A DNA stretch of 42,234 nucleotides from Macrostomum lignano (Eukaryota): assembly GCA_002269645.1 (NCBI GenBank), contig NIVC01000683.1, positions 1 to 42,234 on the forward strand. Direction: 5' to 3'. Both the position numbers and the translations under genes were made by a program. Of the stretch, positions 867 through 39,388 are shown piece by piece. Numbering within the stretch: the first letter of the stretch is position 1; each line of letters starts with the position of its first letter. The notes below the pieces were generated by a model. The model was not told the origin of the DNA. It ran no database searches and was given only the letters and a program-made list of their open reading frames with translations.

Positions 867-1252
867 ATGTCCCAGTCGCGTTCTCGTTCGCTGTCGCGGT
901 CTCCGCGTTCGCCGCGCCTGCTTGAACGCCAGGAACTTCAACGTCGCGGCAGCTTCAGCCGCAGTCGTAGCCGCAGTCCACTAGGCGCTGGCGCTGCAGT
1001 CTTGTCAGCTCCAACGCGATCCAGGCGTCTGCAGTCCAAAAAGTTGCCATGTTGAATTTGCCCTACAGCATTGAGGTGCTACGATTGAAGAGTATTGTTA
1101 GAGAGCGATTGGGCTTCACCGGCTACCTCACTCTGTTAGAAGAACAGGGCAGATTCTCCGGCATCGGCTACATGGACTTTAGAACATATGAAGGCGCTGA
1201 GGAAGCCATTCAACGATTGAACGGCATGGACATTGATGGGCGTAGGATCAAG
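867..1252 (+). CDS. HNRNPM: hnRNP M/MYEF2/Gbp2-like RNA-binding protein, exon 1 (RS-rich N-terminus plus RRM1; apparent 1-nt frameshift at about 1038-1042)
   Basis: ATG at 867 opens MSQSRSRSLSRSPRSP...RSRSRSP. In the -1 frame KVAMLNLPYS (RNP2) ...SGIGYMDF (RNP1) ...AEEAIQRLNGMDIDGRRIK is a clear RRM. Donor AAG|GTAGAC at 1253, phase 0. Symbol is a family-level assignment. Confidence 0.75.
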
Positions 1253-1313
1253 GTAGACTGCTTGTGTTTATCAGCAACATGCTGTGGGGACTAGTGTTCT
1301 TTGTAGCCCAGTT

Positions 1314-2190
1314 TGACTGTCTATAGTGCCAATCTGACTGTCTATAGTGCCAATCTGACTGTCTATAGTGCCAATCTGACTGTCTATAGTGCCAATCTGA
1401 CTGTCTATAGTGCCAATCTGACTGTCTATAGTGCCAATCTGACTGTCTATAGTGCCAATCTGACTGTCTATAGTGACAATTTGACTGTCTATAGTGACAA
1501 GCTGACTGTCTATAGTGCCAATCTGACTGTCTATAGTGCCAATCTGACTGTCTATAGTGACAATCTGACTGTCTATAGTGACAATCTGACTGTCTATAGT
1601 GCCAATCTGACTGTCTATAGTGCCAATCTGACTGTCTATAGTGCCAATCTGACTGTCTATAGTGACAATCTGACTGTCTATAGTGCCAATCTGACTGTCT
1701 ATAGTGCCAATCTGACTGTCTATAGTGACAAGCTGACTGTCTATAGTGACAATCTGACTGTCTATAGTGACAATTTGACTGTCTATAGTGACAAGCTGAC
1801 TGTCTATAGTGCCAATCTGACTGTCTATAGTGCCAATCTGACTGTCTATAGTGACAATCTGACTGTCTATAGTGCCAATCTAACTGTCTATAGTGCCAAT
1901 CTGACTGTCTATAGTGACAATCTGACTGTCTATAGTGACAATCTGACTGTCTATAGTGACAAGCTGACTGTCTATAGTGACAATCTGACTGTCTATAGTG
2001 CCAATCTGACTGTCTATAGTGCCAATCTGACTGTCTATAGTGCCAATCTGACTGTCTATAGTGCCAATCTGACTGTCTATAGTGCCAATCTGACTGTCTA
2101 TAGTGACAATTTGACTGTCTAGTGACAATCTGACTGTCTATAGTGACAATCTGACTGTCTATAGTGACAATCTGACTGTCTACAGTGACA
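1314..2190. repeat. 21-bp minisatellite (TGACTGTCTATAGTGMCAATC)n, about 42 copies, intron 1 of the hnRNP M-like gene
   Basis: Direct reading. A unit length divisible by 3 yields the spurious (TVYSANL)n ORF. Confidence 0.97.
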
Positions 2191-2240
2191 ACTTTCTATT
2201 TTCTATTAGTAATAATGTATCTATACTACTAACTGAACAG

Positions 2241-2500
2241 GTACGCGAAGAGGTGCCTAGCGATCGGGGACGACTAGAAAGAATGGAACGCGAATCCGCC
2301 GCAGGTATCGGACGGGGAGGCGGAGGCGGAGGTGGCGGCAGGGGCAGGGACGGTGGATCCGGCTACAATCGAAGAAGCCCAGAAAGAGCCGACAGAGGAT
2401 CTGGTGGCGGCAGCGGCGGCAGTGCTCAAGCTCTGCTCAATCAGCTGGGCATTCGAGGACCAATTAGTAATAGCGTGTTTGTCAGCAATTTGGATTCGAG
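2241..2500 (+). CDS. HNRNPM: hnRNP M-like protein, exon 2 (end of RRM1, Gly/Arg-rich linker, start of RRM2)
   Basis: Acceptor CTAACTGAACAG| at 2240 continues RRIK-VREE. Encodes GRGGGGGGGGRGRDGG and NSVFVSNLDS. Donor GAG|GTAAAT at 2501, phase 2. Confidence 0.9.
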
Positions 2501-2577
2501 GTAAATTTATTAATTAATATTGTTAGCTTGATTCTGTAATATACTGTTACTGCCATTTTGATCTATTGTTTCCTTCC

Positions 2578-3540
2578 ATTCACTGAGAGTCACTCTTGAT
2601 CCGCCCCTATCCTGAAAGTCACTCCTAAACCGCCCTTTTCCCTGGGAGTCACTCCTGATCCACCATCCTCACTGAGAATCACTCCTGATCCGCCATCTTG
2701 ACTGAGAGTCACTCCTGATCCGCCATCTTCACTGAGAATCACTCCTGATCTGCCATCTTACTGAGAGTCACTCCTGATCCGCCATCCTCACTGAGAGTCA
2801 CCCCTGATCCGCCATCTTGACTGAGAGTCACTCCTGATCTGCCATCCTCACTGAGAGTCACTCCTGATCCGCCATCTTCACTGAGAGTCACTCCTGATCC
2901 GCCATCTTCAATAAGATAAGAATCACTCCTGATTCGCCATCTTCACTGAGAGTCACTCCTGATCCGCCCTTTTCCCTGAAAGTCACTCCTAAACCGCCCT
3001 TTTCCCTGGGAGTCACCCCTGATCCGCCCCTCTGAGAGTTACTTCTGATCCGCATCCTCACTGAGAGTCACTCCTGATCCGCCATCCTCACTGAGAGTCA
3101 CTCCTGATCCGCCATCCTCACTGAGAGTCACTCCTGATCCGCCATCCTCACTGAGAGTCACTCCTGATCCGCCATCCTCACTGAGAGTCACTCCTGATCC
3201 GCCATCCTCACTGAGAGTCACTCCTGATCCGCCATCCTCACTGAGAGTCACTCCTGATCCGCCATCCTCACTGAGAGTCACTCCTGATCCGCCATCCTCA
3301 CTGAGAGTCACTCCTGATCCGCAATCTTCACTGAGAGTCACTCCTGATCTGCCATCTTCACTGAGAGTCACTCCTGATCCGCCATCTTCAATAAGATAAG
3401 AATCACTCCTGATTCGCCATCCTCACTGAGAGTCACTCCTGATCTGCCATCCTCACTGAGAGTCACTTCTGATCCGCCATCCTCACTGAGAATCACCCCT
3501 GATCCGCATCCTCACTGAGAATCACTCCTGATCCACCCCC
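2578..3540. repeat. About 30-bp minisatellite (CACTGAGAGTCACTCCTGATCCGCCATCCT)n, intron 2
   Basis: Direct reading. About 30 copies, with degenerate flanks. Confidence 0.96.
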
Positions 3541-3646
3541 TCATGCGAGAATCGCTGCTATATCTTTAGCTTGATCCTAAGGTAAGTGGGATCTTGATTC
3601 CTTTAGCTTATTTTTTAAAGTAAACCGCACTAATTCAAACCTGCAG

Positions 3647-3975
3647 CGTGAACTGGCAGAAGCTCAAGGACGTGTTCCGCTTAGCCGGGCGGGTAGTGAA
3701 GGCTGACATCATCGGCGATCCTCGCAGCTCATCGGGCAAGGTGGCCGGCCTCGTTCAATTCGAGACCCCATTAGAAGCCGCTCAAGCGATCAGCATGCTA
3801 AACAATCAGATGCTTTACAATAGGCCCATGCGAGTTAGAATGGACCTGCCGGAGGGTGAACGGCCCGATGGTAAGCACCGTGGAGGCAGCAGCGGCCTGC
3901 CTGAAGGTCTTGGCGGCGTTGGAGCGGCACTGGATCAGGCCACGGCTCGGGAGCTGCAGGGCATGCTTGGCGGAG
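3647..3975 (+). CDS. HNRNPM: hnRNP M-like protein, exon 3 (RRM2)
   Basis: Acceptor CTGCAG| at 3646, phase-consistent. VNWQKLKDVFRLAGRVVKADI...GLVQFETPLEAAQAISMLNNQMLYNRPMRVRMD matches hnRNP M RRM2 from memory. Donor GAG|GTACGT at 3976, phase 1. Confidence 0.92.
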
Positions 3976-4029
3976 GTACGTAACTTCATTTTTCATGTGC
4001 GATTTTAACTGTAGATATCAGATTTGTCA

Positions 4030-4840
4030 GGCTCAAGCTAGGGGGTCAGGAGTGGTTCTCAAGCTAAGGGTCAGGAGTGATTCTCAAGCTAAGGGTCAGG
4101 AGTGATTCTCAAGCTAAGGGTCAGGATTGATTCTCAGTCGGTTAGGAGTGATTCTCAAGCTAAGGGTCAGGAGTGATTCTCAAGCTAAGGGTCAGGAGTG
4201 ATTCTCAAGCTAAGGATCAGGAGTGATTCTCAAGCTAAGGGTCAGGATTGATTCTCAAGCTAAGGGTCAGGAGTGATTCTCAAGCTAAGGGTCAGGATTG
4301 ATTCTCAGTCGGTTAGGAGTGATTCTCAAGCTAAGGGTCAGGATTGATTCTCAGTCGGTTAGGAGTGATTCTCAAGCTAAGGGTTAGGAGTGATTCTCAA
4401 GCTAAGGGTCAGGATTGATTCTCAGTCGGTTAGGAGTGATTCTCAAGCTAAGGGTCAGGAGTGATTCTCAAGCTAAGGGTCAGGAGTGATTCTCAAGCTA
4501 AGGGTCAGGATTGATTCTCAAGCTAAGGGTCAGGAGTGATTCTCAAGCTAAGGGTCAGGAGTGAATCTCAAGCTAAGGGTCAGGAGTGATTCTCAAGCTA
4601 AGGGTCAGGAGTGATTCTCAAGCTAAGGGTCAGGAGTGATTCTCAAGCTAAGGGTCAGGATTGATTCTCAGTCGGTTAGGAGTGATTCTCAAGCTAAGGG
4701 TCAGGAGTGATTCTCAAACTGAGGGGTCGGGAGTGATTCTCAAACTAAGGGTCAGAAGTGATTCTCAGGCGGTCGGGAGTGAATCTCAAGCTAAGGGTCA
4801 GGAGTGAATCTCAAGCTAAGGGTCAGGAGTGATTACCAGG
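4030..4840. repeat. 25-bp minisatellite (AAGCTAAGGGTCAGGAGTGATTCTC)n, intron 3
   Basis: Direct reading. Its reverse complement shares GAGARTCACTCCTGA with the intron 2 array. Confidence 0.96.
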
Positions 4841-4996
4841 TGCCGGATATAATGGTAGTCTTTTAGTGCAATGATGCTTTAAGTTCATAACAATACCTAA
4901 TATAGTATCGCAGTGAGTCATATAGTTTTGTGAAATCTGGATGGCATTAAATCGTTAATCAATCGATGCACTCGCTGTGCCGTCTGGTGACATCAG

Positions 4997-5298
4997 CAGA
5001 TGGTCGTCATCGCAGAGGCGGAGGAGGCGGCGTAGGAGGAGGCGGCGGAGGCGGAGGCGGAAGCACGGACACAGTGTTTGTTAGCAATCTGCCTTATAGC
5101 TACGATTGGAGCAGTCTTAAAAAGGCGTTCCGCGGCGTTGGCGGAGTTCGATTTGCCGATGTTGACATTGGGCCGGACAAGCGCAGTCTGGGCACCGGCC
5201 ACGTGCAGTTCAGCAGCTCGTCGGATGCTCGCAGAGCCGTGTCGATGATGGACGGCGTTAAAATTGAAGGCCGATCTATTCGTGTAGCGCTGCGATGA
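4997..5298 (+). CDS. HNRNPM: hnRNP M-like protein, exon 4 (poly-Gly plus RRM3, stop TGA)
   Basis: Tandem acceptor CAG|CAG| (start 4997 or 5000) in phase 1. DTVFVSNLPYSYDWSSLKKAF...GTGHVQFSSSSDARRAVSMMDGVKIEGRSIRVALR* is a C-terminal RRM as in hnRNP M. Confidence 0.9.
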
Positions 5299-19098: not shown

Positions 19099-20680
<1,582 letters not shown>

Positions 20681-20884
20681 TAGAAAAGTGCATATACTGT
20701 TGTGTTTTCCAAACGACTTTTATTTATATCTTAAGGTGGACAAGGAATCAACTTATGTTATCTCAAATATAAATTCAGTCAACTAGTTGAGGTTTCTGAC
20801 GTCATTTTGTTAATCTATGAATGTTTTTTTAAATGCAACTTACTTTCCTTAACTTAACCGCAAAAAACCCGAATCTTGGTGCAC

Positions 20885-21130
20885 TTGGTTTGAGCGAGTC
20901 AGCATGCTGGTAATTCTAGTCAACTGCGTCACCCTCGGCATGTACCAACCGTGCACGGACGAGCAGTGCGTCACCACCAGGTGCCAGGTGCTACACGGCT
21001 TTGACCACGCTGTATTCGCATTTTTCGCTTGCGAACTGGCCGCCAAGGTGTGCGCAATGGGCCTCTGGGGCCAGCTGGCCTACCTGGGCGACTCCTGGAA
21101 TCGGTTGGACTTCTTTATTGTGATCGCCGG
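20885..21130 (+). CDS. Cav3: Cav3 exon 2 (domain I S1-S3)
   Basis: [23 protein letters not shown]...[19 protein letters not shown]...[17 protein letters not shown]. Donor GG|GTGAGT at 21131. Confidence 0.96.
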
Positions 21131-21361
21131 GTGAGTAGGTGTAAGAGCCGAAAATTTAGAGATAATTTACGAAGTATATTTTGATGCACAATAATTTAGG
21201 AGCGATTAAATAGTCAGCGATGATAGATCGATTTAAGTGACTCACCCAACTGGGGTGGCGGGCATGCACAGAGAAGAAAGCGAGATGCAAGTACACATAC
21301 TAATAGAGCAGCCCCCAACCCCGACGGCCCAAACCAAGCGCAACTTTACATAGGGATTGAG

Positions 21362-22947
21362 CAGTGTTTCACAAAGTACAAGACCGTAGCGTCACAACAC
21401 TGAATCATCGTGTTGTTTCACAAAGTACAAGACCGTAGCGTCACAACACTGAATCATCGTGTTGTTTCACAAAGTACAAGACCGTAGCGTCACAACATGA
21501 ATCATCGTGTTGTTTCACAAAGTACAAGACCGTAGCGTCACAACACTGAATCATCGTGTTGTTTCGCAAAGTACAAGACCGTAGCGTCACAACACTGAAT
21601 CATCGTGTTGTTTCACAAAGTACAAGACCGTAGCGTCACAACACTGAATCATCGTGTTGTTTCACAAAGTACAAGACTGTAGCGTCACGACACTGAATCA
21701 TCGTGTTGTTTCACAAAGTACAAGACTGTAGCGTCACAACACTGAATCATCGTGTTGTTTCACAAAGTACAAGACTGTAGCGTCACGACACTGAATCATC
21801 GTGTTGTTTCACAAAGTACAAGACCGTAGCGTCACGACACTGAATCATCGTGTTGTTTCACAAAGTACAAGACCGTAGCGTCACAACACTGAATCATCGT
21901 GTTGTTTCACAAAGTACAAGACCGTAGCGTCACAACACTGAATCATCGTGTTGTTTCACAAAGTACAAGACCGTAGCGTCACGACACTGAATCATCGTGT
22001 TGTTTCACAAAGTACAAGACCGTAGCGTCACGACACTGAATCATCGTGTTGTTTCACAAAGTACAAGACCGTAGCGTCACAACACTGAATCATCGTGTTG
22101 TTTCACAAAGTACAAGACCGTAGCGTCACAACACTGAATCATCGTGTTGTTTCACAAAGTACAAGACCGTAGCGTCACAACACTGAATCATCGTGTTGTT
22201 TCACAAAGTACAAGACCGTAGCGTCACGACACTGAATCATCGTGTTGTTTCACAAAGTACAAGACCGTAGCGTCACAACACTGAATCATCGTGTTGTTTC
22301 GCAAAGTACAAGACCGTAGCGTCACAACACTGAATCATCGTGTTGTTTCACAAAGTACAAGACCGTAGCGTCACGACACTGAATCATCGTGTTGTTTTAC
22401 AAAGTACAAGACCGTAGCGTCACAACACTGAATCATCGTGTTGTTTCACAAAGTACAAGACCGTAGCGTCACAACACTGAATCATCGTGTTGTTTCACAA
22501 AGTACAAGACCGTAGCGTCACAACACTGAATCATCGTGTTGTTTCGCAAAGTACAAGACCGTAGCGTCACAACACTGAATCATCGTGTTGTTTCACAAAG
22601 TACAAGACCGTAGCGTCACAACACTGAATCATCCTGTTGTTTCGCAAAGTACAAGACCGTAGCGTCACAACACTGAATCATCGTGTTGTTTCGCAAAGTA
22701 CAAGACCGTAGCGTCACAACACTGAATCATCGTGTTGTTTCACAAAGTACAAGACCGTAGCGTCACAACACTGAATCATCGTGTTGTTTCACAAAGTACA
22801 AGACCGTAGCGTCACAACACTGAATCATCGTGTTGTTTCACAAAGTACAAGACCGTAGCGTCACAACACTGAATCATCGTGTTGTTTCACAAAGTACAAG
22901 ACCGTAGCGTCACGACACTGAATCATCGTGTTGTTTCACAAAGTACA
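21362..22947. repeat. 49-bp minisatellite (GTGTTGTTTCACAAAGTACAAGACCGTAGCGTCACAACACTGAATCATC)n, about 32 copies
   Basis: Period 49 confirmed between 21541 and 21590. Highly homogeneous. Confidence 0.98.
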
Positions 22948-28576: not shown

Positions 28577-28649
28577 GTTGGTTGTCAGATTTTTGTTATA
28601 ATGTTGACTATAGAATTAATAGCACATCTAGTTTGAATAGCACTTTGGA

Positions 28650-29430
28650 ATGGATTGCCAATCTAGCGAATAAGTAGAATGGATTGCTAATCTAGCCAAT
28701 GACCAGAATGGATCGCTAATCTAGCCAATGAGTAGAATGGATTGCCAATCTAGCGAATGAGTAGAATGGATTGCTAATCTAGCCAATGAGTAGAATGGAT
28801 TGCTAATCTAGACAATGAGTAGAATAGATTGCTAATCTAGCCAATGAGTAGAATGGATTGCTAATCTAGCCAATGAGTAGAATGGATTGCTAATCTAGCC
28901 AATGAGTAGAATGGATTGCTAATCTAGCCAATGACCAGAATGGATTGCTAATCTAGACAATGAGTAGAATGGATTGCTAATCTAGCCAATGAGTAGAATG
29001 GATTGCTAATCTAGCCAATGAGTAGAATGGATTGCTAATCTAGCCAATGAGTAGAATGGATTGCTAATCTAGCCAATGACCAGAATGGATTGCTAATCTA
29101 GACAATGAGTAGAATGTATTGCTAATCTAGCCAATGAGTAGAATGGATTGCCAATCTAGCCAATGAGTAGAATGGATTGCTAATCTAGCCAATGAGTAGA
29201 ATTGATTGCTAATCTAGCCAATGAGTAGAATGGATTGCTAATCTAGACAATGAGTACAATGGATTGCTAATCTAGACGATAAGTACAGTGGATTGCTAAT
29301 CTAGACAATGAGTAGAATGGATTGCTAATCTAGCCAATGAGTAGAATGGATTGCTAATCTAGACAATGAGTAGAATGGATTGCTAATCTAGACAATGAGT
29401 AGAATGGATTGCTAATCTAGACAATGAGTA
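28650..29430. repeat. 29-bp minisatellite (GAGTAGAATGGATTGCTAATCTAGCCAAT)n, about 27 copies
   Basis: Direct reading. Confidence 0.97.
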
Positions 29431-30069
29431 CTACTTTGTTTCGCTAATTGTAGTGAGTAATAATTAATAAATTGATTTAATTAGTCGGCTTGAAATTATT
29501 CTAAGTGATTCAGAGCATTTTAGTCACTCAGAAAACTCCAAGTAGCTATGTTTAGCATCCAGTGGTGAACGAGCACAGGAAAAACATGTCCAACGGACTA
29601 AGTGTTTACCACCCGGCTGGCATCCATGCGATACAAATATTTTCCACTACTCTGATAGTTCGGCTCGGCATCACGGAGTGTTTTATCATTGCGCGTTGTT
29701 ATTTATCTTGGCCTAACACCTAACACGTGGGCTTCCATCAAAGGCTACAGTGGGGGTGGAGGTCCGATGATGCACCCTCTCGGAATCAATTCCTGGGGAA
29801 CTGCGCGCACACTCTGTGCCGGCTCTGCGCCGGGCCTGGGTAGCGCATTTTGGGCCAGATCAATATAAAGACATCTCCCAGCACAGCTGCTGCAGAGCTG
29901 GGCTGAGCCGCCGCTAAGCTATTCGATGGCGAGCTGAGCCGAAACAAGTTTTGGTCACGCGCGTGCGCTTTGTGTGTGCGTATTTTTTTTCTGGAGGAAT
30001 TCAATATGAGGATTATGAAGATTATCAATAGTTGATGAGTTCAGTTCGAATGAGGCTAATGCTTGTTTT

Positions 30070-31560: not shown

Positions 31561-31955
31561 GCTGGGCCAGCCTCCCAGATCCTCAGTTGCTGGGCCAGCC
31601 TCCCAGATCCCCAGTTGCTGGGCCAGCCTTCCAGATCCTCAGTTGCTGGGCCAGCCTCTCAGATCCTCAGTTGCTGGGCCAGCCTCCCAGATCCTCAGTT
31701 GCTGGGCCACCCTCCCAGATCCTCAGTTGCTGGGCCAGCCTTCCAGATCCTCAGTTGCTGGGCCAGCCTCCCAGATCACCAGTTGCTGGGTCAGCCTCCC
31801 AGATCCTCAGTTGCTGGGCCAGCCTCCCAGAGTGTCAGTTGCTGGGCCAGCTTCCCAGGTTCTCAGTTGCTAGGCCAGCCTCCCAGATAATCAGTTGCTG
31901 GGCCAGCCTCCCAGGTTCTCAGTTGCTAGGCCAGCCTCCCAGATCCTCAGTTGCT
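31561..31955. repeat. 28-bp minisatellite, same family and orientation as 96-795, about 14 copies
   Basis: Identical consensus GGGCCAGCCTCCCAGATCCTCAGTTGCT. Confidence 0.96.
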
Positions 31956-32528: not shown

Positions 32529-32615
32529 CTGCAGCACCGCAAACTGAGAAACTGCTGGGCCGCTTGTCTCGAGCTCCTCTCGGCCGGCTGAGGTCGAGCG
32601 GCAATCTGCTTACCT
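32529..32615 (+). CDS. Cav3: Candidate optional 87-nt Cav3 I-II linker exon
   Basis: TTGCAG| ... |GTGAGC, phase 1-1, 87 nt, open frame AAPQTEKLLGRLSRAPLGRLRSSGNLLT. No recognised conserved motif. Confidence 0.45.
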
Positions 32616-33317: not shown

Positions 33318-33439
33318 CATTTTGGAAGACAATCCGACGTCAGGTTAAGCAGCTCATTGATCACAGATTTTTTCAACGAGGGATTCTAATTGCCATACTC
33401 ATCAACACTATGAGCATGGGCATCGAGTTTCACAACCAG
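33318..33439 (+). CDS. Cav3: Cav3 exon (end of I-II linker, domain II S1)
   Basis: FWKTIRRQVKQLIDHRFFQRGILIAILINTMSMGIEFHNQ. Acceptor TTTCCAG|, donor CAG|GTAAGC. Confidence 0.96.
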
Positions 33440-33515: not shown

Positions 33516-33667
33516 CCGCAAACGCTCACGGACATCATTGAGTACAGCAACGTGTTCTTTTGTGGCGTATTTGCTCTAGAGATGCTGCTCAAACTGCTGG
33601 GCGATGGTCTCATTGACTATGTCAGCAGCGGATTCAACGTCTTCGATGCGTCCATTGTTATTTTGAG
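33516..33667 (+). CDS. Cav3: Cav3 exon (domain II S2-S3)
   Basis: PQTLTDIIEYSNVFFCGVFALEMLLKLLGDGLIDYVSSGFNVFDASIVIL. Donor AG|GTGAGT. Confidence 0.96.
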
Positions 33668-34052: not shown

Positions 34053-34238
34053 CGGTTTCGAGCTTCTGCAAGGTCACGGCAGCGGCCTATCGGTACTGCG
34101 CACCTTCCGTCTGCTTCGAATACTCAAGCTGGTGAGATTTCTGCCGGCTTTGCGACAACAGCTATTCGTCATGCTCAAGACTATGGATAATGTTGCTACG
34201 TTCTTTGCATTGCTAGTGCTGTTTATCTTCATATTTAG
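34053..34238 (+). CDS. Cav3: Cav3 exon (domain II S4-S5)
   Basis: [51 protein letters not shown]. Donor AG|GTAAGT, phase 2. Confidence 0.97.
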
Positions 34239-35563
34239 GTAAGTGAAAAACTATTTAATCATAATATTTTCATTGTTTTTTTCATCATAAATTACATGTA
34301 TGTTTATGCGTACAATAACTGTAAACATATCACTTTATTCATGACCTACTGATGAAGTAACTCTGATTTGTTTAAATGAGCGTTTTTTCCCGAATGAATA
34401 GCATAAATTTCCAAGTACTTTATCGTTGATTTTCGAATTGAAAATCAATTATTTGCTACTCTAGAATTGCATTGCTTCTGCTATACTTGGCTCAGTTCGA
34501 GTTGCTAAACACAACGTTCTTGCTCAAACATTTAGAAAAAAAAGAATAACAAACGAAGAAGCGTCCGTAATTGGCCTGCGCCTGATTGAGAGATTGCTCG
34601 TTTGGCCTGGCAATCTGTTCATGATCTTTGCTGGAAATCGCTCGCCGCAACCCTTCTTACTACAGCAGATTTAATCCCCGGGATTGAGCAGGGAATGGAG
34701 GATGAGAGAAAAGGAGAGAAGGCCGAGTATGCACTTTTTCAAATACGAGCCGTAGATCAAGCATCCATAACGCGATAGAAAAGGGCAGGAGGGGTTGCCG
34801 AGCATCTCGGAGACAACTGCAGGGTCAGAGCAACGGCAAGGCAAAGGCTAACTGGAATTTGTTCCGCATGGTTTCTCCAGATCATCCCCTCTTTCTCTTC
34901 CCCAGCCGTCCCGCTTGTCATCGCGAGCTGTCCTGACGATGAAAGCCAGAACTAAAGAGATGTTTGCGTGCGTTTAATTCTCTGAGGGTCAATGAAACAC
35001 GAAGCAGTTCCTGTTTCCTAATTACTTTGTAGAATATTCACAATATCTGTTGCAGCTTTGCTTTAATTAAAAATGACGCAGACATCATTACGGACGCATC
35101 GACTTTCTGACTATTACATTATTACCGATTTCCCATTTTTCCAAGTTTTTGAGTTCGAATATCTCGATTTGCATCAAAATGGTGTAAAAGGTGTGCTTTA
35201 AAATTGACGAGAATTTTGTCGTAAAAATATTTTATCTTTGGCTGTGTTTTTGTGCCATTTTTTGTGAAGTCTTCCGAGGAAACTTTTTCGATAGAAAGCA
35301 GAAAGAAGAGCCATGCAATATCTGCTTGATAGACCAAAATTGTAATTCATATTTTTCAGGTCATTAGACTTTCATGTACGATATCACTGATACATGCGTG
35401 CAAAGTTGCCAAATTTCTGGTTTAGAAATTCAAGCTAACAAGTAACAATTACGAGGTTCCAGTTAGTTTTGTAATATGCCTCATCTTTGATAGCGCCCAC
35501 TTGGTGTGTGTAATGTTAGCGCTCGTTCGGTAATGATTGGGCCGCGCTAACCCAATGTTTCAG

Positions 35564-35681
35564 CATATTGGGCATGAGTCTGTTCGGCTGTCAATTCTGC
35601 GGTACAACACCGCGTGGCAACTACAGATGCGCAAGGCAGAACTTTGACACCCTGCTGTGGGCAACTGTCACCGTTTTTCAG
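35564..35681 (+). CDS. Cav3: Cav3 mutually exclusive domain II turret exon, 12a type (short, 3 Cys)
   Basis: [39 protein letters not shown]. 118 nt, phase 2-0. CTAAC branch, TTTCAG| acceptor, |GTATTC donor. Confidence 0.93.
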
Positions 35682-36596
35682 GTATTCTTTGTGGCTCCAG
35701 AGACTGACTGAACATGAGCAGGTAGTGCTCCTGGGGTTAGGTGGGTTGTCACGCCACACTAAAGCCAGCGCGCCGGTGTCTTTTTGACAGGCTGTTTTGT
35801 TTTGTCTTTAAATTTTTCTACAATACTCGCTTGCAGTTTCGTGTGCATTTTTTATTCGTTCGTCTTTTGGTAGTTCAATTAAGTACGGCAACCTAGTCGC
35901 TTTGGGGAAGAAGCGATTGAAAAACTTGAGAAGTATGATCAAACTACTCGTAATAATCCATATGAAATATTTTCATGTTTTTAAGAAATCTTCAAGCGAC
36001 TAGATTGCTGTTTAGATCAAAATTTGGCTGTTATAGAACTAACTCAGCCTAATGTTGCACCGCATGAAACGTTCTCAATGTACGCTCGTAGTATTGTAGT
36101 GACTTTTCTATTCAACAACTATTAAAATCAAACAAAGCGGTGTAACTTCTCTTTGAAATAACATCGAATAATAAGTTTACTATCGAGTTTTTCAGATAAT
36201 TAGGAAAGATTTTTAATAGCAGCCATTTTTGACTACGTGGTCGTTTGTGAAACGTTTTAGTAAATATTTAGCGTATTGTCGAACTCTTGTCAACTACTGT
36301 AGCTTGCAAACTGGTAGCAATTGTAGCACAACTTCGCACTAAATTTTACTTCTTTTGAGACGCTGCTGCCTTCTTGGCAGCTTTCCTGTAATCTTGTAGT
36401 TTACCACAGAAATGTTTTGTAGTATACTCTACTAATAAGTAATATGCCCAGTTTTTGCGCCAAAGAAACAGTTCTACCGCTCGTCATTGCAAGTTGTTTG
36501 TTTTCACACAAAGTCCACAGTTGCCATGACATCCGCACTGATGTACATCTCTCCCGTATCCAATCCTCCCCTTACTCTATGCTATGCCCATCTCAG

Positions 36597-36750
36597 CGTC
36601 CTTGGCATGACCCTGTTTGGTGGTAAGTTCTGCTGGCATCCCGACGGCTCGACGTGCACTTGTTCAGAGCGCGCCGATCCTGACACGGACTGCGAGTGCG
36701 ACAGAGCCAACTTCGACAGCATCATGTGGTCGCTGGTGACAGTATTCCAG
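36597..36750 (+). CDS. Cav3: Cav3 mutually exclusive domain II turret exon, 12b type (long, 5 Cys)
   Basis: VLGMTLFGGKFCWHPDGSTCTCSERADPDTDCECDRANFDSIMWSLVTVFQ. 154 nt, phase 2-0. Paralogous to 35564-35681. Confidence 0.94.
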
Positions 36751-37407
36751 GTAGAACGGCTAGCTTTACGGAGTGATCATCCACCTTCTAATTGCTTGCA
36801 GATTAGGGGAGGCCAAAGGGCCTTTTTGGATGAAGTGCAAGTTTGGTTATTCAACCAGCAGATATAAATTAGAAATGTACACTTGTCAACCATTCACAGT
36901 AGCATTATGACATTTAATCCATGCCAGATTTGCAAAAGAGACGAAGGGTTGATTTCATTTCTCTATGATCTCAAAGTCTGCCATTGCAACATTTAATTTA
37001 GTCTTATAAACGTCAGTTTTGGTCTTCTACGCCTGTAAAATCAAGCCAATCGTCGAGGCTGTCAACTCATATCGCCATGGAGCATCAACAAGAATTCTTG
37101 AGAAGAGCTAGAAAGCAATTAGATTTGACTCGTCTGGTTTATAGTTTAGGATACTAAGGGGCTGATTTCGCGTGCTGTTTAAGAAGTGCTGTTTATTGGA
37201 TCTTCACATACTGGAATAACTATATGTGACACTCACAATTCAATGTGTGAAATATTAGTGTCTACACTTCTTTCAGTATCAGCCCAATGTCACTTAAATT
37301 TGCCATCTTCTTTTCCTTGGGTTTTTTGGCCTCAGGAGCGTAGGAGTTATTAATGAACAAAAAGCATTTAACTCAATGTACACAAGTAAAGGCAAGATGG
37401 ACTTAAC

Positions 37408-37645
37408 GCAGCCTAGGGGGCAGGCCCAATCGGTCTCAGCCAATGAGAGAGCAGTAAAGAGAGAGGTCAAAGTCAGACAGACGAAACTCAGCCTAGGGGC
37501 GGGCAGGCCCAATCTCGATCAGCCAATGAGAGAGCAGTAAGGAGAGAGTTCTAAGTAAGACGGACGAAACTCAGCCTAGGGGGCAGGCCCAATCGGTCTC
37601 AGCCAATGAGAGAGCAGGTAAGGAGAGAGGTCAAAGTCAGACACA
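37408..37645. repeat. Three tandem copies of an 80-85-bp unit, each with two CCAAT motifs
   Basis: CAGCCTAGGGG...GCAGGCCCAAT...CAGCCAATGAGAGAGCAG recurs three times. Confidence 0.85.
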
Positions 37646-38451
37646 AGCGGGCAAGAGGAAAGCCAAACTGTTTGCTTATCGGCCTAGCCCTTCTCCTTCT
37701 CTTTCTTGCTGGCTATGCACACGCACTGGATTTGGAGTTTTCATGCAATCTTCATTCAGTCTTACTTTTATTCTTTTTAAAAAAACGAGTCTGAGACAGC
37801 TTGGAGTAGGTGAAACAGGGTCTTTAATGGGTCTTTAATGGGTCTGCTTGTAGAAAGCCATTGTTGCAGCATAAAAAGGAACTTTAAACGTTGTGTAAAA
37901 ATGATTTTATTAGATTATATTATAACTAATTAATCTTTGCTATGAAACTAACCTTTGTACAGTGTAAGTCCGTTTAACAGTAGAAAGACCACACTAGGCA
38001 ATTGAAATCCATAAATATATATATATATACATGTATATACATTTGATCAGAATGAGTAGTTGGAATCCCTTTTGGCTTGGGTTGATAGCTGAAATTCCTA
38101 CAGTTACTGATGTCTGTCTACTGAATCAGGAAGAAGCCTTTGACAGCGTTATATTGTCACAAATTAATAATTATATTTTCTTAATCCTTGATGTTTTTGA
38201 CATACTGCATTGCAAATACCCACTAGCACCATTAATTAGCAGAAAAGTCTATGGACTGTTTCGTATTTTTATTTAACTTTCCAATGGATGTTGTGCTGTG
38301 TCTGGCTTAATAAAGTGTGGCTTTTTATTTACTATTTGGGTTTTTAGGAGGCATGCTATAGGAACTGCGTATTGAGTAGCTACATTCATTTGTTTTTTGC
38401 TAAAACCCGATTACTGTATATTAATTTTTAGGAGCTAGATTTTCAGTGTTT

Positions 38452-38722
38452 AATGAATGGATACTCAGTGTGCATATGAGTGGATATTCATGAGTGTTTA
38501 ATAAATGGATACTCAGTTTTTAATTGAATGGATACTCAGTGTGTATATGAGTGGATATTCAGTGTCTATATGGGTGGATATTCAGTGCGTATATGGGCGG
38601 ATATTCAGTGTCTATATGGGTGGATATTCAGTGTCTATATGGGTGGATGTTCAGTGTTTATATGGGCGGATATTCAGTGTCTATATGGTTGGATTTTCAC
38701 TGTCTATATGGGTGGATATTTA
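38452..38722. repeat. 23-bp minisatellite (GGATATTCAGTGTCTATATGGGT)n
   Basis: Direct reading. Confidence 0.93.
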
Positions 38723-38777
38723 TGACTATGAATAATGAACTAAACTGTACAACAACTTTCACGTCAACCATTGGCAG

Positions 38778-38933
38778 ATCCTGACCCAGGAGGATTGGAA
38801 CACGGTCCTCTACAATGGCATGGCGAGAACTTCGCCTTGGGCGGCTCTGTACTTTATTGCTCTAATGACATTTGGCAACTATGTGCTATTCAATCTGCTG
38901 GTTGCCATCCTCGTTGAAGGATTTTCCAGCGAG
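38778..38933 (+). CDS. Cav3: Cav3 exon (domain II selectivity filter and S6)
   Basis: [52 protein letters not shown]. Donor GAG|GTGAGA. Confidence 0.97.
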
Positions 38934-39388
38934 GTGAGAATGACGTCATCAATAAACTCTGCCTGCGTTTTATTAGAAATGATTTTAAATTGCTAACCAA
39001 ACTTCCTTTGAGCACAATTACTTTATATGTTTCATGGAGTTTAGCCTGGCATTTGAAAACATCAGGAATATCATGTGAAATTTTTCGAGCTAGCCATCAT
39101 ACTTCAGCTGTAGAGTAATTCCATGCTAGTTAGCATTATTAGCGATGGACATTATGGACCCCATGATGCACCGGCTCTGCTTGCTAGCTGAACTTGTAAC
39201 CTACTCATACTTGCTCACTGGTTCCATATCACAAAGTTTTAACCCATAATTAACCAATGCGAAACTTTATACAAACTTTTTTTTACGTAATTTTTTATGT
39301 TTAAACCTACGAGTACCAGTGCCTCCGCAAGCTCAATCACAATATCCCTCCTTCTGGGCTAACGGAGCAAGTGTGAGTGTCTGATGCG

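Follow-up and report, generated by a model that had tools for sequence, protein, structure and literature searches.

Paired 12a- and 12b-type turret exons, exclusive by reading frame, in the domain II region of a Cav3 (T-type) channel gene from the flatworm Macrostomum lignano

Introduction

The T-type calcium channel Cav3 of protostomes is known for two alternative exons, 12a and 12b, which were described in Lymnaea in 2014 (Senatore et al. 2014) and have since been surveyed across protostomes (PMC4436565). Exon 12a is defined as encoding 38-46 amino acids with a CxxC…C pattern, and exon 12b as encoding 48-55 amino acids with a C…CxC…CxC pattern (Guan et al. 2020, PMC7382465). Platyhelminthes are given as the group in which the alternative loop makes its first appearance, and Macrostomum lignano is named as one of its bearers, with exon 12a and/or 12b (PMC7382465). 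Flatworms are said there to carry 'one or both' exons, and a later study also lists flatworms (Guan et al. 2022, JBC; PMC9694082).

What the two exons do is best understood for the channel of the snail Lymnaea stagnalis, LCav3. Here, lysine K1067 of exon 12a neutralises the domain II Asp, which yields a Na+-permeable channel; the K1067A exchange turns 12a 12b-like in its selectivity, and the Ala-to-Lys exchange in 12b does the reverse (PMC9694082). A division of this kind, with Lys in 12a and a neutral residue in 12b, has been claimed for molluscs and nematodes only (PMC9694082, PMC10120453). Work on the snail channel further identified C1054-C1064 as an intraloop bridge with nine residues in between, the domain I S1-S2 loop as the disulfide partner region of the domain II turret cysteine, and the D4L6 loop as a second requirement, besides 12a, for chimeras to be permeable to Na+ (PMC7382465).

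Here, we follow up a first-pass annotation of a stretch of M. lignano DNA, which we refer to as the window (42,234 nucleotides, forward strand of contig NIVC01000683.1). Made from the sequence alone, the annotation had noted a pair of mutually exclusive Cav3 domain II turret exons and proposed that this animal keeps the snail switch between Na+-permeable and Ca2+-selective channels. Its account of the 12a/12b biology of Lymnaea is accurate when compared with PMC7382465, PMC9694082 and PMC4436565. Its suggestion that the pair may be unreported in this lineage does not hold, since M. lignano had already been named in PMC7382465 and flatworms in PMC9694082. The exon pair is a correct re-discovery of something already known for flatworms and opens no new question by itself. 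It does, however, put a published invertebrate T-type feature at exact genomic coordinates in a model flatworm, and these coordinates help annotation. Mildly new are the Gln at the position of the snail lysine, the omission of 12a from the protein models and the absence of a domain I pore segment from the assembly.

Results and discussion

Similarity assigns the window to the 5' half of a Cav3 gene

Similarity to known channels shows that the window holds the 5' half of an M. lignano Cav3 T-type channel gene, comprising domain I, the I-II linker and domain II (Table 1). The domain II product found its best matches in human Cav3.2, Cav3.3 and Cav3.1, well ahead of every structure of the Cav1, Cav2, Nav and NALCN types; taken by itself, the domain II stretch reached 335-337 bits against human Cav3.2/Cav3.3, while the best Cav2 match amounted to about 323 bits in total. 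When domain I was joined from the upstream exons, the same ranking was obtained, with scores of 328 bits (Cav3.3) and about 200 bits (Cav1), and a Pfam search with the gene product detected Ion_trans. The Cav3-type succession of Glu and Asp in the domain II filter is present (ILTQEDWN, 38778-38801), as is a gating-brake segment after IS6 that aligns to human Cav3.3 residues 376-441. A complete Cav3 channel would have an EEDD filter ring formed by domains I-IV; the domain I filter segment is absent from the window as assembled (see below), and domains III and IV lie beyond it.

For a UniRef protein of M. lignano, A0A1I8GIZ2 (P0043, 232 residues), one chain of GT-AG exons in the window gives a 100% match; it runs through the four exons listed first in Table 1 and ends in exon 12b. 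This match identifies the source as M. lignano, a free-living flatworm. The second M. lignano entry, A0A1I8IGT2 (P0137), differs from it by one residue. Both entries are 232-aa fragments that begin after one minisatellite and end inside 12b at …VTVF. Protein database searches returned no M. lignano protein containing 12a, and the two fragments that were found use 12b. The Cav3 gene is badly under-annotated: its protein models are fragmentary and exon 12a is missing from them.

The M. lignano Cav3 included in PMC7382465 (text and Supplementary Figs S1 and S5) comes from the same species and is very probably the product of the same gene. The garbled text of Supplementary Fig. S5 contains two apparent Macrostomum rows whose D1 S1-S2 stretch resembles the loop encoded in the window; the row labelled 'Macrouron' has the reading 'EQCVTRCOVLEHGHAV'.

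Table 1. Coordinates of the Cav3 features discussed in the text (positions in the window).
Feature	Position	Strand	Evidence or remark
End of I-II linker exon, start of the A0A1I8GIZ2 model	32531..32615	+	sole GT-AG chain at 100%
Domain II S1 exon	33318..33439	+	exon chain matching A0A1I8GIZ2
Domain II S1-S3 exon	33516..33667	+	exon chain matching A0A1I8GIZ2
Exon '11', domain II S3-S4-S5 (…FIFIF)	34053..34238	+	donor GTAAGT; ends with AG of a Ser codon
Intron 11-12a, 1325 nt	34239..35563	+	CTAAC branch-point-like motif about 15 nt before AG; weak pyrimidine tract
Exon 12a type, 118 nt, 3 Cys (CxxC-9-C), Gln (CAG) before NFD	35564..35681	+	translation, alignment
Intron 12a-12b, 915 nt	35682..36596	+	folding z = -1.16, RNA structure not unusual
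Exon 12b type, 154 nt, 5 Cys (C…CxC…CxC), Ala before NFD	36597..36750	+	strong pyrimidine tract; used in both annotated fragments
Intron 12b-13, 2027 nt	36751..38777	+	holds an 83-nt x 2.9 repeat (37405-37643) and a 23-nt x 12 minisatellite (38438-38720)
Exon 13: end of P1 helix, domain II filter Glu and 'beacon' Asp (TQEDW), P2 helix, S6	38778..38935	+	donor GTGAGA
Domain I S1-S2 loop cysteines	20949..20984	+	translation of ORF 20853-21131; aligns to human Cav3.3 'pcddmdclsdrc'

Exons 12a and 12b are exclusive by reading frame

Exon 12a (39 codons) is bordered by …tttcAG and GTattc, and exon 12b (51 codons) by …atctcAG and GTagaa. Translated in frame, the cysteines of 12a read C-Q-F-C, followed by nine residues and a further C, and exon 12b encodes VLGMTLFGGKFCWHPDGSTCTCSERADPDTDCECDRANFDSIMWSLVTVFQ, in which the five Cys are arranged as C...CxC...CxC. 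The two exons share 43% protein identity (tblastn E of about 1e-9 within the window), and tblastn detected no third exon-12 copy within the window. Re-reading of the sequence reproduced the annotated coordinates, lengths, Cys patterns and S5-P identity exactly, with the AG/GT borders in place.

Exon 11 ends with two bases of a codon, AG, and both 12a and 12b start with the C that completes it to Ser. As annotated, both exons are 3n+1 long, so that inclusion of both or of neither shifts the frame. Splicing in silico bore this out: the 12a-only and the 12b-only products are both open through exon 13, whereas inclusion of both exons leads to a stop nine codons into 12b and omission of both to a stop after two codons. 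By reading frame, only the single inclusion of either 12a or 12b encodes a channel. The pair can be confirmed as Cav3 domain II turret exons of the 12a (3-Cys) and 12b (5-Cys) types, exclusive by frame.

Each exon is nearest to its own class in other animals

Both exons lie within the published length ranges and show the Cys patterns of their respective classes. An alignment to the 12a and 12b exons of other animals, which the first-pass annotation had put forward as a check, placed each exon nearest to its own class. With the 3-Cys exons found in other animals, 12a had BLOSUM62 scores of 125-151, compared with 101 for its neighbour 12b and 83-96 for 5-Cys exons; 12b reached 161-184 with 5-Cys exons (from the animal locus L001 and from a mite), compared with 99-130 for 3-Cys exons. 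The introns flanking 12a and 12b show no similarity to each other. Since each exon scores higher with its own class than with its neighbour, and since the flanking introns are dissimilar, the duplication is old and each exon is the counterpart of its class elsewhere. On the strength of these scores the duplication is placed before the split of the protostome phyla. Both copies have stayed in open frame and have retained their splice sites together with every signature residue. The comparison loci from other small animals (L001-L004) have a single exon-12 type each and few or no introns, and are uninformative on the paired arrangement.

One mite model (P0065, Leptotrombidium) reads from the tail of a 12a-type exon (…CDRKNFDSLLWALVTVFQ) directly into a 12b-type exon. 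This read-through looks like an annotation error that reveals both exon types adjoining in a mite. Its 12b-type exon has Lys before NFN.

Compared with Lymnaea LCav3, the flatworm pair agrees in family, in position (the S5-P1 turret before the TQEDW exon), in lengths (39 and 50-51 codons) and in Cys patterns, as well as in the placement of 12a upstream of 12b and in the Ala before NFD in 12b. It differs from LCav3 in that 12a has Gln in place of K1067. Exon 12a also aligns without gaps to the turrets of human Cav3.2 and Cav3.3, has the same loop length as human Cav3.2, and its first Cys matches the vertebrate turret Cys that bonds to the domain I voltage sensor. Unlike the turrets encoded in the window, those of vertebrate Cav3.1-3.3 come from a single exon, have one Cys and no intraloop disulfide, and carry Lys before NFD yet are Ca2+-selective.

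Control of the splice choice

All splice sites of the exon pair are of the GT-AG type. At 915 nt, the intron between 12a and 12b is long enough to splice, so that steric hindrance is not the cause of exclusivity. This intron folds no better than shuffled sequences, and Rfam detected no RNA family in the window. A docking/selector RNA pairing that would enforce exclusion was considered and rejected, given that only short, weak inverted repeats were found (the best being 21 nt at 76%, besides an 18-nt local hairpin). Aberrant products containing both exons or neither would presumably be removed by nonsense-mediated decay, and the choice between 12a and 12b is presumably made by a regulator. The stronger pyrimidine tract of 12b gives only a hint that 12b might be the default exon; the tract of 12a is weak but is accompanied by the CTAAC motif upstream of its AG.

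Proposed role of the two turrets

We consider it likely that the two exons are the flatworm counterparts of protostome 12a and 12b, that is, ancient cassettes of which one is spliced between exon 11 and exon 13, and that the differing turrets should tune the channel. According to this model, each exon would encode the whole S5-P1 extracellular turret of domain II, and one of them would be joined between exon 11 (ending at 34238) and exon 13 (starting at 38778). Inclusion of both or of neither would lead to a stop within 2-9 codons, the step reproduced in silico, and only single-exon products would encode the channel. Extrapolating from the snail channel work, the products would differ in turret length (39 versus 51 residues), in the number of Cys (three versus five) and in their disulfide pattern, and one turret Cys would probably form its disulfide with the S1-S2 loop of domain I, the cysteines of which are present. 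Located over the domain II filter (TQEDW), the turret should, if the snail analogy holds, tune permeation, divalent block or gating.

The lysine position and Na+/Ca2+ selectivity

From the numbering of the C1054-C1064 bridge it follows that K1067 is the third residue after the last Cys, directly before NFD, and the gapless alignment of 12a to human ...DRKNFD places the equivalent position at the same site. In the window, this residue is Gln in 12a (C-A-R-Q-N-F-D) and Ala in 12b (C-D-R-A-N-F-D); a Lys before NFD in 12a combined with a neutral residue in 12b, as in the mollusc/nematode type, is not found, 12a having Gln. The proposal that this animal keeps the Na+/Ca2+ switch is uncertain: the exon pair is conserved, but the lysine that confers Na+ permeability in the snail is replaced by Gln, and a domain I filter segment is absent from the gene as assembled (see below). 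Another hallmark of the Na+-permeable 12a isoform, the four-cysteine D4L6 loop, is encoded in domain IV and lies beyond the window.

These residues bring up the strongest alternative, to which we assign a substantial weight that stays short of even, namely that 12a and 12b are alternatively spliced but play no part in a Na+/Ca2+ switch and differ instead in gating kinetics, voltage-sensor tethering or divalent block. Gln in 12a and Ala in 12b would both leave the domain II 'beacon' Asp un-neutralised, and in the snail the exchange of this one residue is sufficient to convert either isoform towards the other (K1067A in 12a, A-to-K in 12b; PMC9694082). The wider distribution of the residue points in the same direction, given that the Lys/neutral division has been claimed for molluscs and nematodes only, that arthropod 12b exons carry Lys at this position (P0018, P0024, P0065) and that some 3-Cys exons have Ala or Gln before NFD (P0007 group, P0046). 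On the other hand, the Ca2+ selectivity of vertebrate loops with Lys at this site argues that the residue acts only in context, and other basic residues of the 12a loop (R at TTPR, NYR and CAR) might reach the Asp. With Gln in place of the snail 12a lysine and the usual Ala in 12b, the size of any Na+/Ca2+ shift is uncertain. We tentatively raise the possibility, to which we give a slightly smaller weight than to the alternative just described, that the pair arose, or is kept in this early-branching flatworm, for a purpose other than Na+/Ca2+ selectivity, such as gating speed or voltage-sensor tethering; in that case, Na+ permeability of 12a would have been acquired later, in some lineages. 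The Lys-to-Gln difference offers a cheap test of the single-lysine selectivity model outside molluscs and nematodes.

Gln before NFD is likewise seen in the 3-Cys turret (…CNRQNFD) of a Cav3-like gene on a metagenome contig (L002, 10238-10627). In the domain II filter of this gene, VLTLVDWN stands in place of TQEDW, and the filter Glu is apparently replaced.

A domain I pore segment is missing from the assembled gene

As assembled, the gene is devoid of about 21 codons of the domain I pore loop: there is no counterpart of the stretch with the filter Glu and the P2 helix (residues 355-375 in human Cav3.3), and nothing similar to the domain I filter segment was found on either strand of the window. 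The preceding exon ends with …NFDNIGFAWVAIFQ (28577), after which only a remnant, YYFVSLIV (29432-29455, followed by GTGAGT), is recognisable before coding resumes from 30715. The gap is filled by a 29-nt x 27 minisatellite (28648-29430) that lies directly against YYFVSLIV, and the repeat unit, which starts with GAATGGATT and ends with TGAGTA, resembles the 3' end and donor of the expected exon. The segment 28578-28650 was considered as a decayed remnant of the missing domain I exon and rejected, its alignment score having been reached by 445 of 1000 shuffles. Either the segment was lost when this repeat-rich region was assembled, or the copy carries a real lesion; in its assembled form, the gene may not give rise to a functional channel.

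A second alternative would be that the locus is a damaged duplicate or a misassembled Cav3 copy from which no working channel is made, the exon 12 pair having survived intact merely because the damage occurred recently. The unmatched pore segment with its filter Glu, the minisatellite abutting YYFVSLIV in its place and the shortness of the annotated models, which are fragments, all speak for such damage. Nevertheless, we regard this explanation as unlikely: neither frameshifts nor stops interrupt the alignments of all the other domain I and domain II exons, identity between the exons and the annotated protein is 100%, and sequence lying between repeat arrays can go missing from repeat-rich assemblies of long reads. 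The lack of any detectable degraded exon remnant is equally compatible with a clean loss during assembly and with a deletion.

A third alternative, in which splicing of this gene always takes 12b and 12a is a relic without use, is in our view highly improbable. In its favour, both annotated fragments use 12b, the pyrimidine tract is stronger at 12b and 12a is without the lysine. Against it, 12a still has an open frame, AG/GT borders, the correct phase and the CTAAC motif in spite of a duplication that predates the split of the protostome phyla, and it keeps the NFD…W…VTVFQ helix as well as three Cys spaced by exactly nine residues, none of which neutral sequence would have preserved for so long. 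Moreover, some lineages that lost one exon have no trace of it (PMC4436565).

Other features of the window

Upstream of the Cav3 gene, the window contains a separate gene on the forward strand (971-5295), the product of which has three RNA-recognition motifs (RRM_1, E 2e-9 to 3e-16). The exons of this gene were located near 971-1291, 3624-3980 and 4951-5295, with minisatellites filling the introns. Tandem repeats make up about 35% of the window, in more than 20 arrays with periods of 4-140 nt, such as (ATAG)x390 at 19099-20646 and an array of 49 nt x 32 at 21365-22947, and nearly every Cav3 intron has one. One 28-nt minisatellite unit (AGATCCTCAGTTGCTGGGCCAGCCTCCC and its rotation) occurs both at 96-793, just before the RRM gene, and 31 kb away at 31561-31955, in the region of the Cav3 I-II linker.
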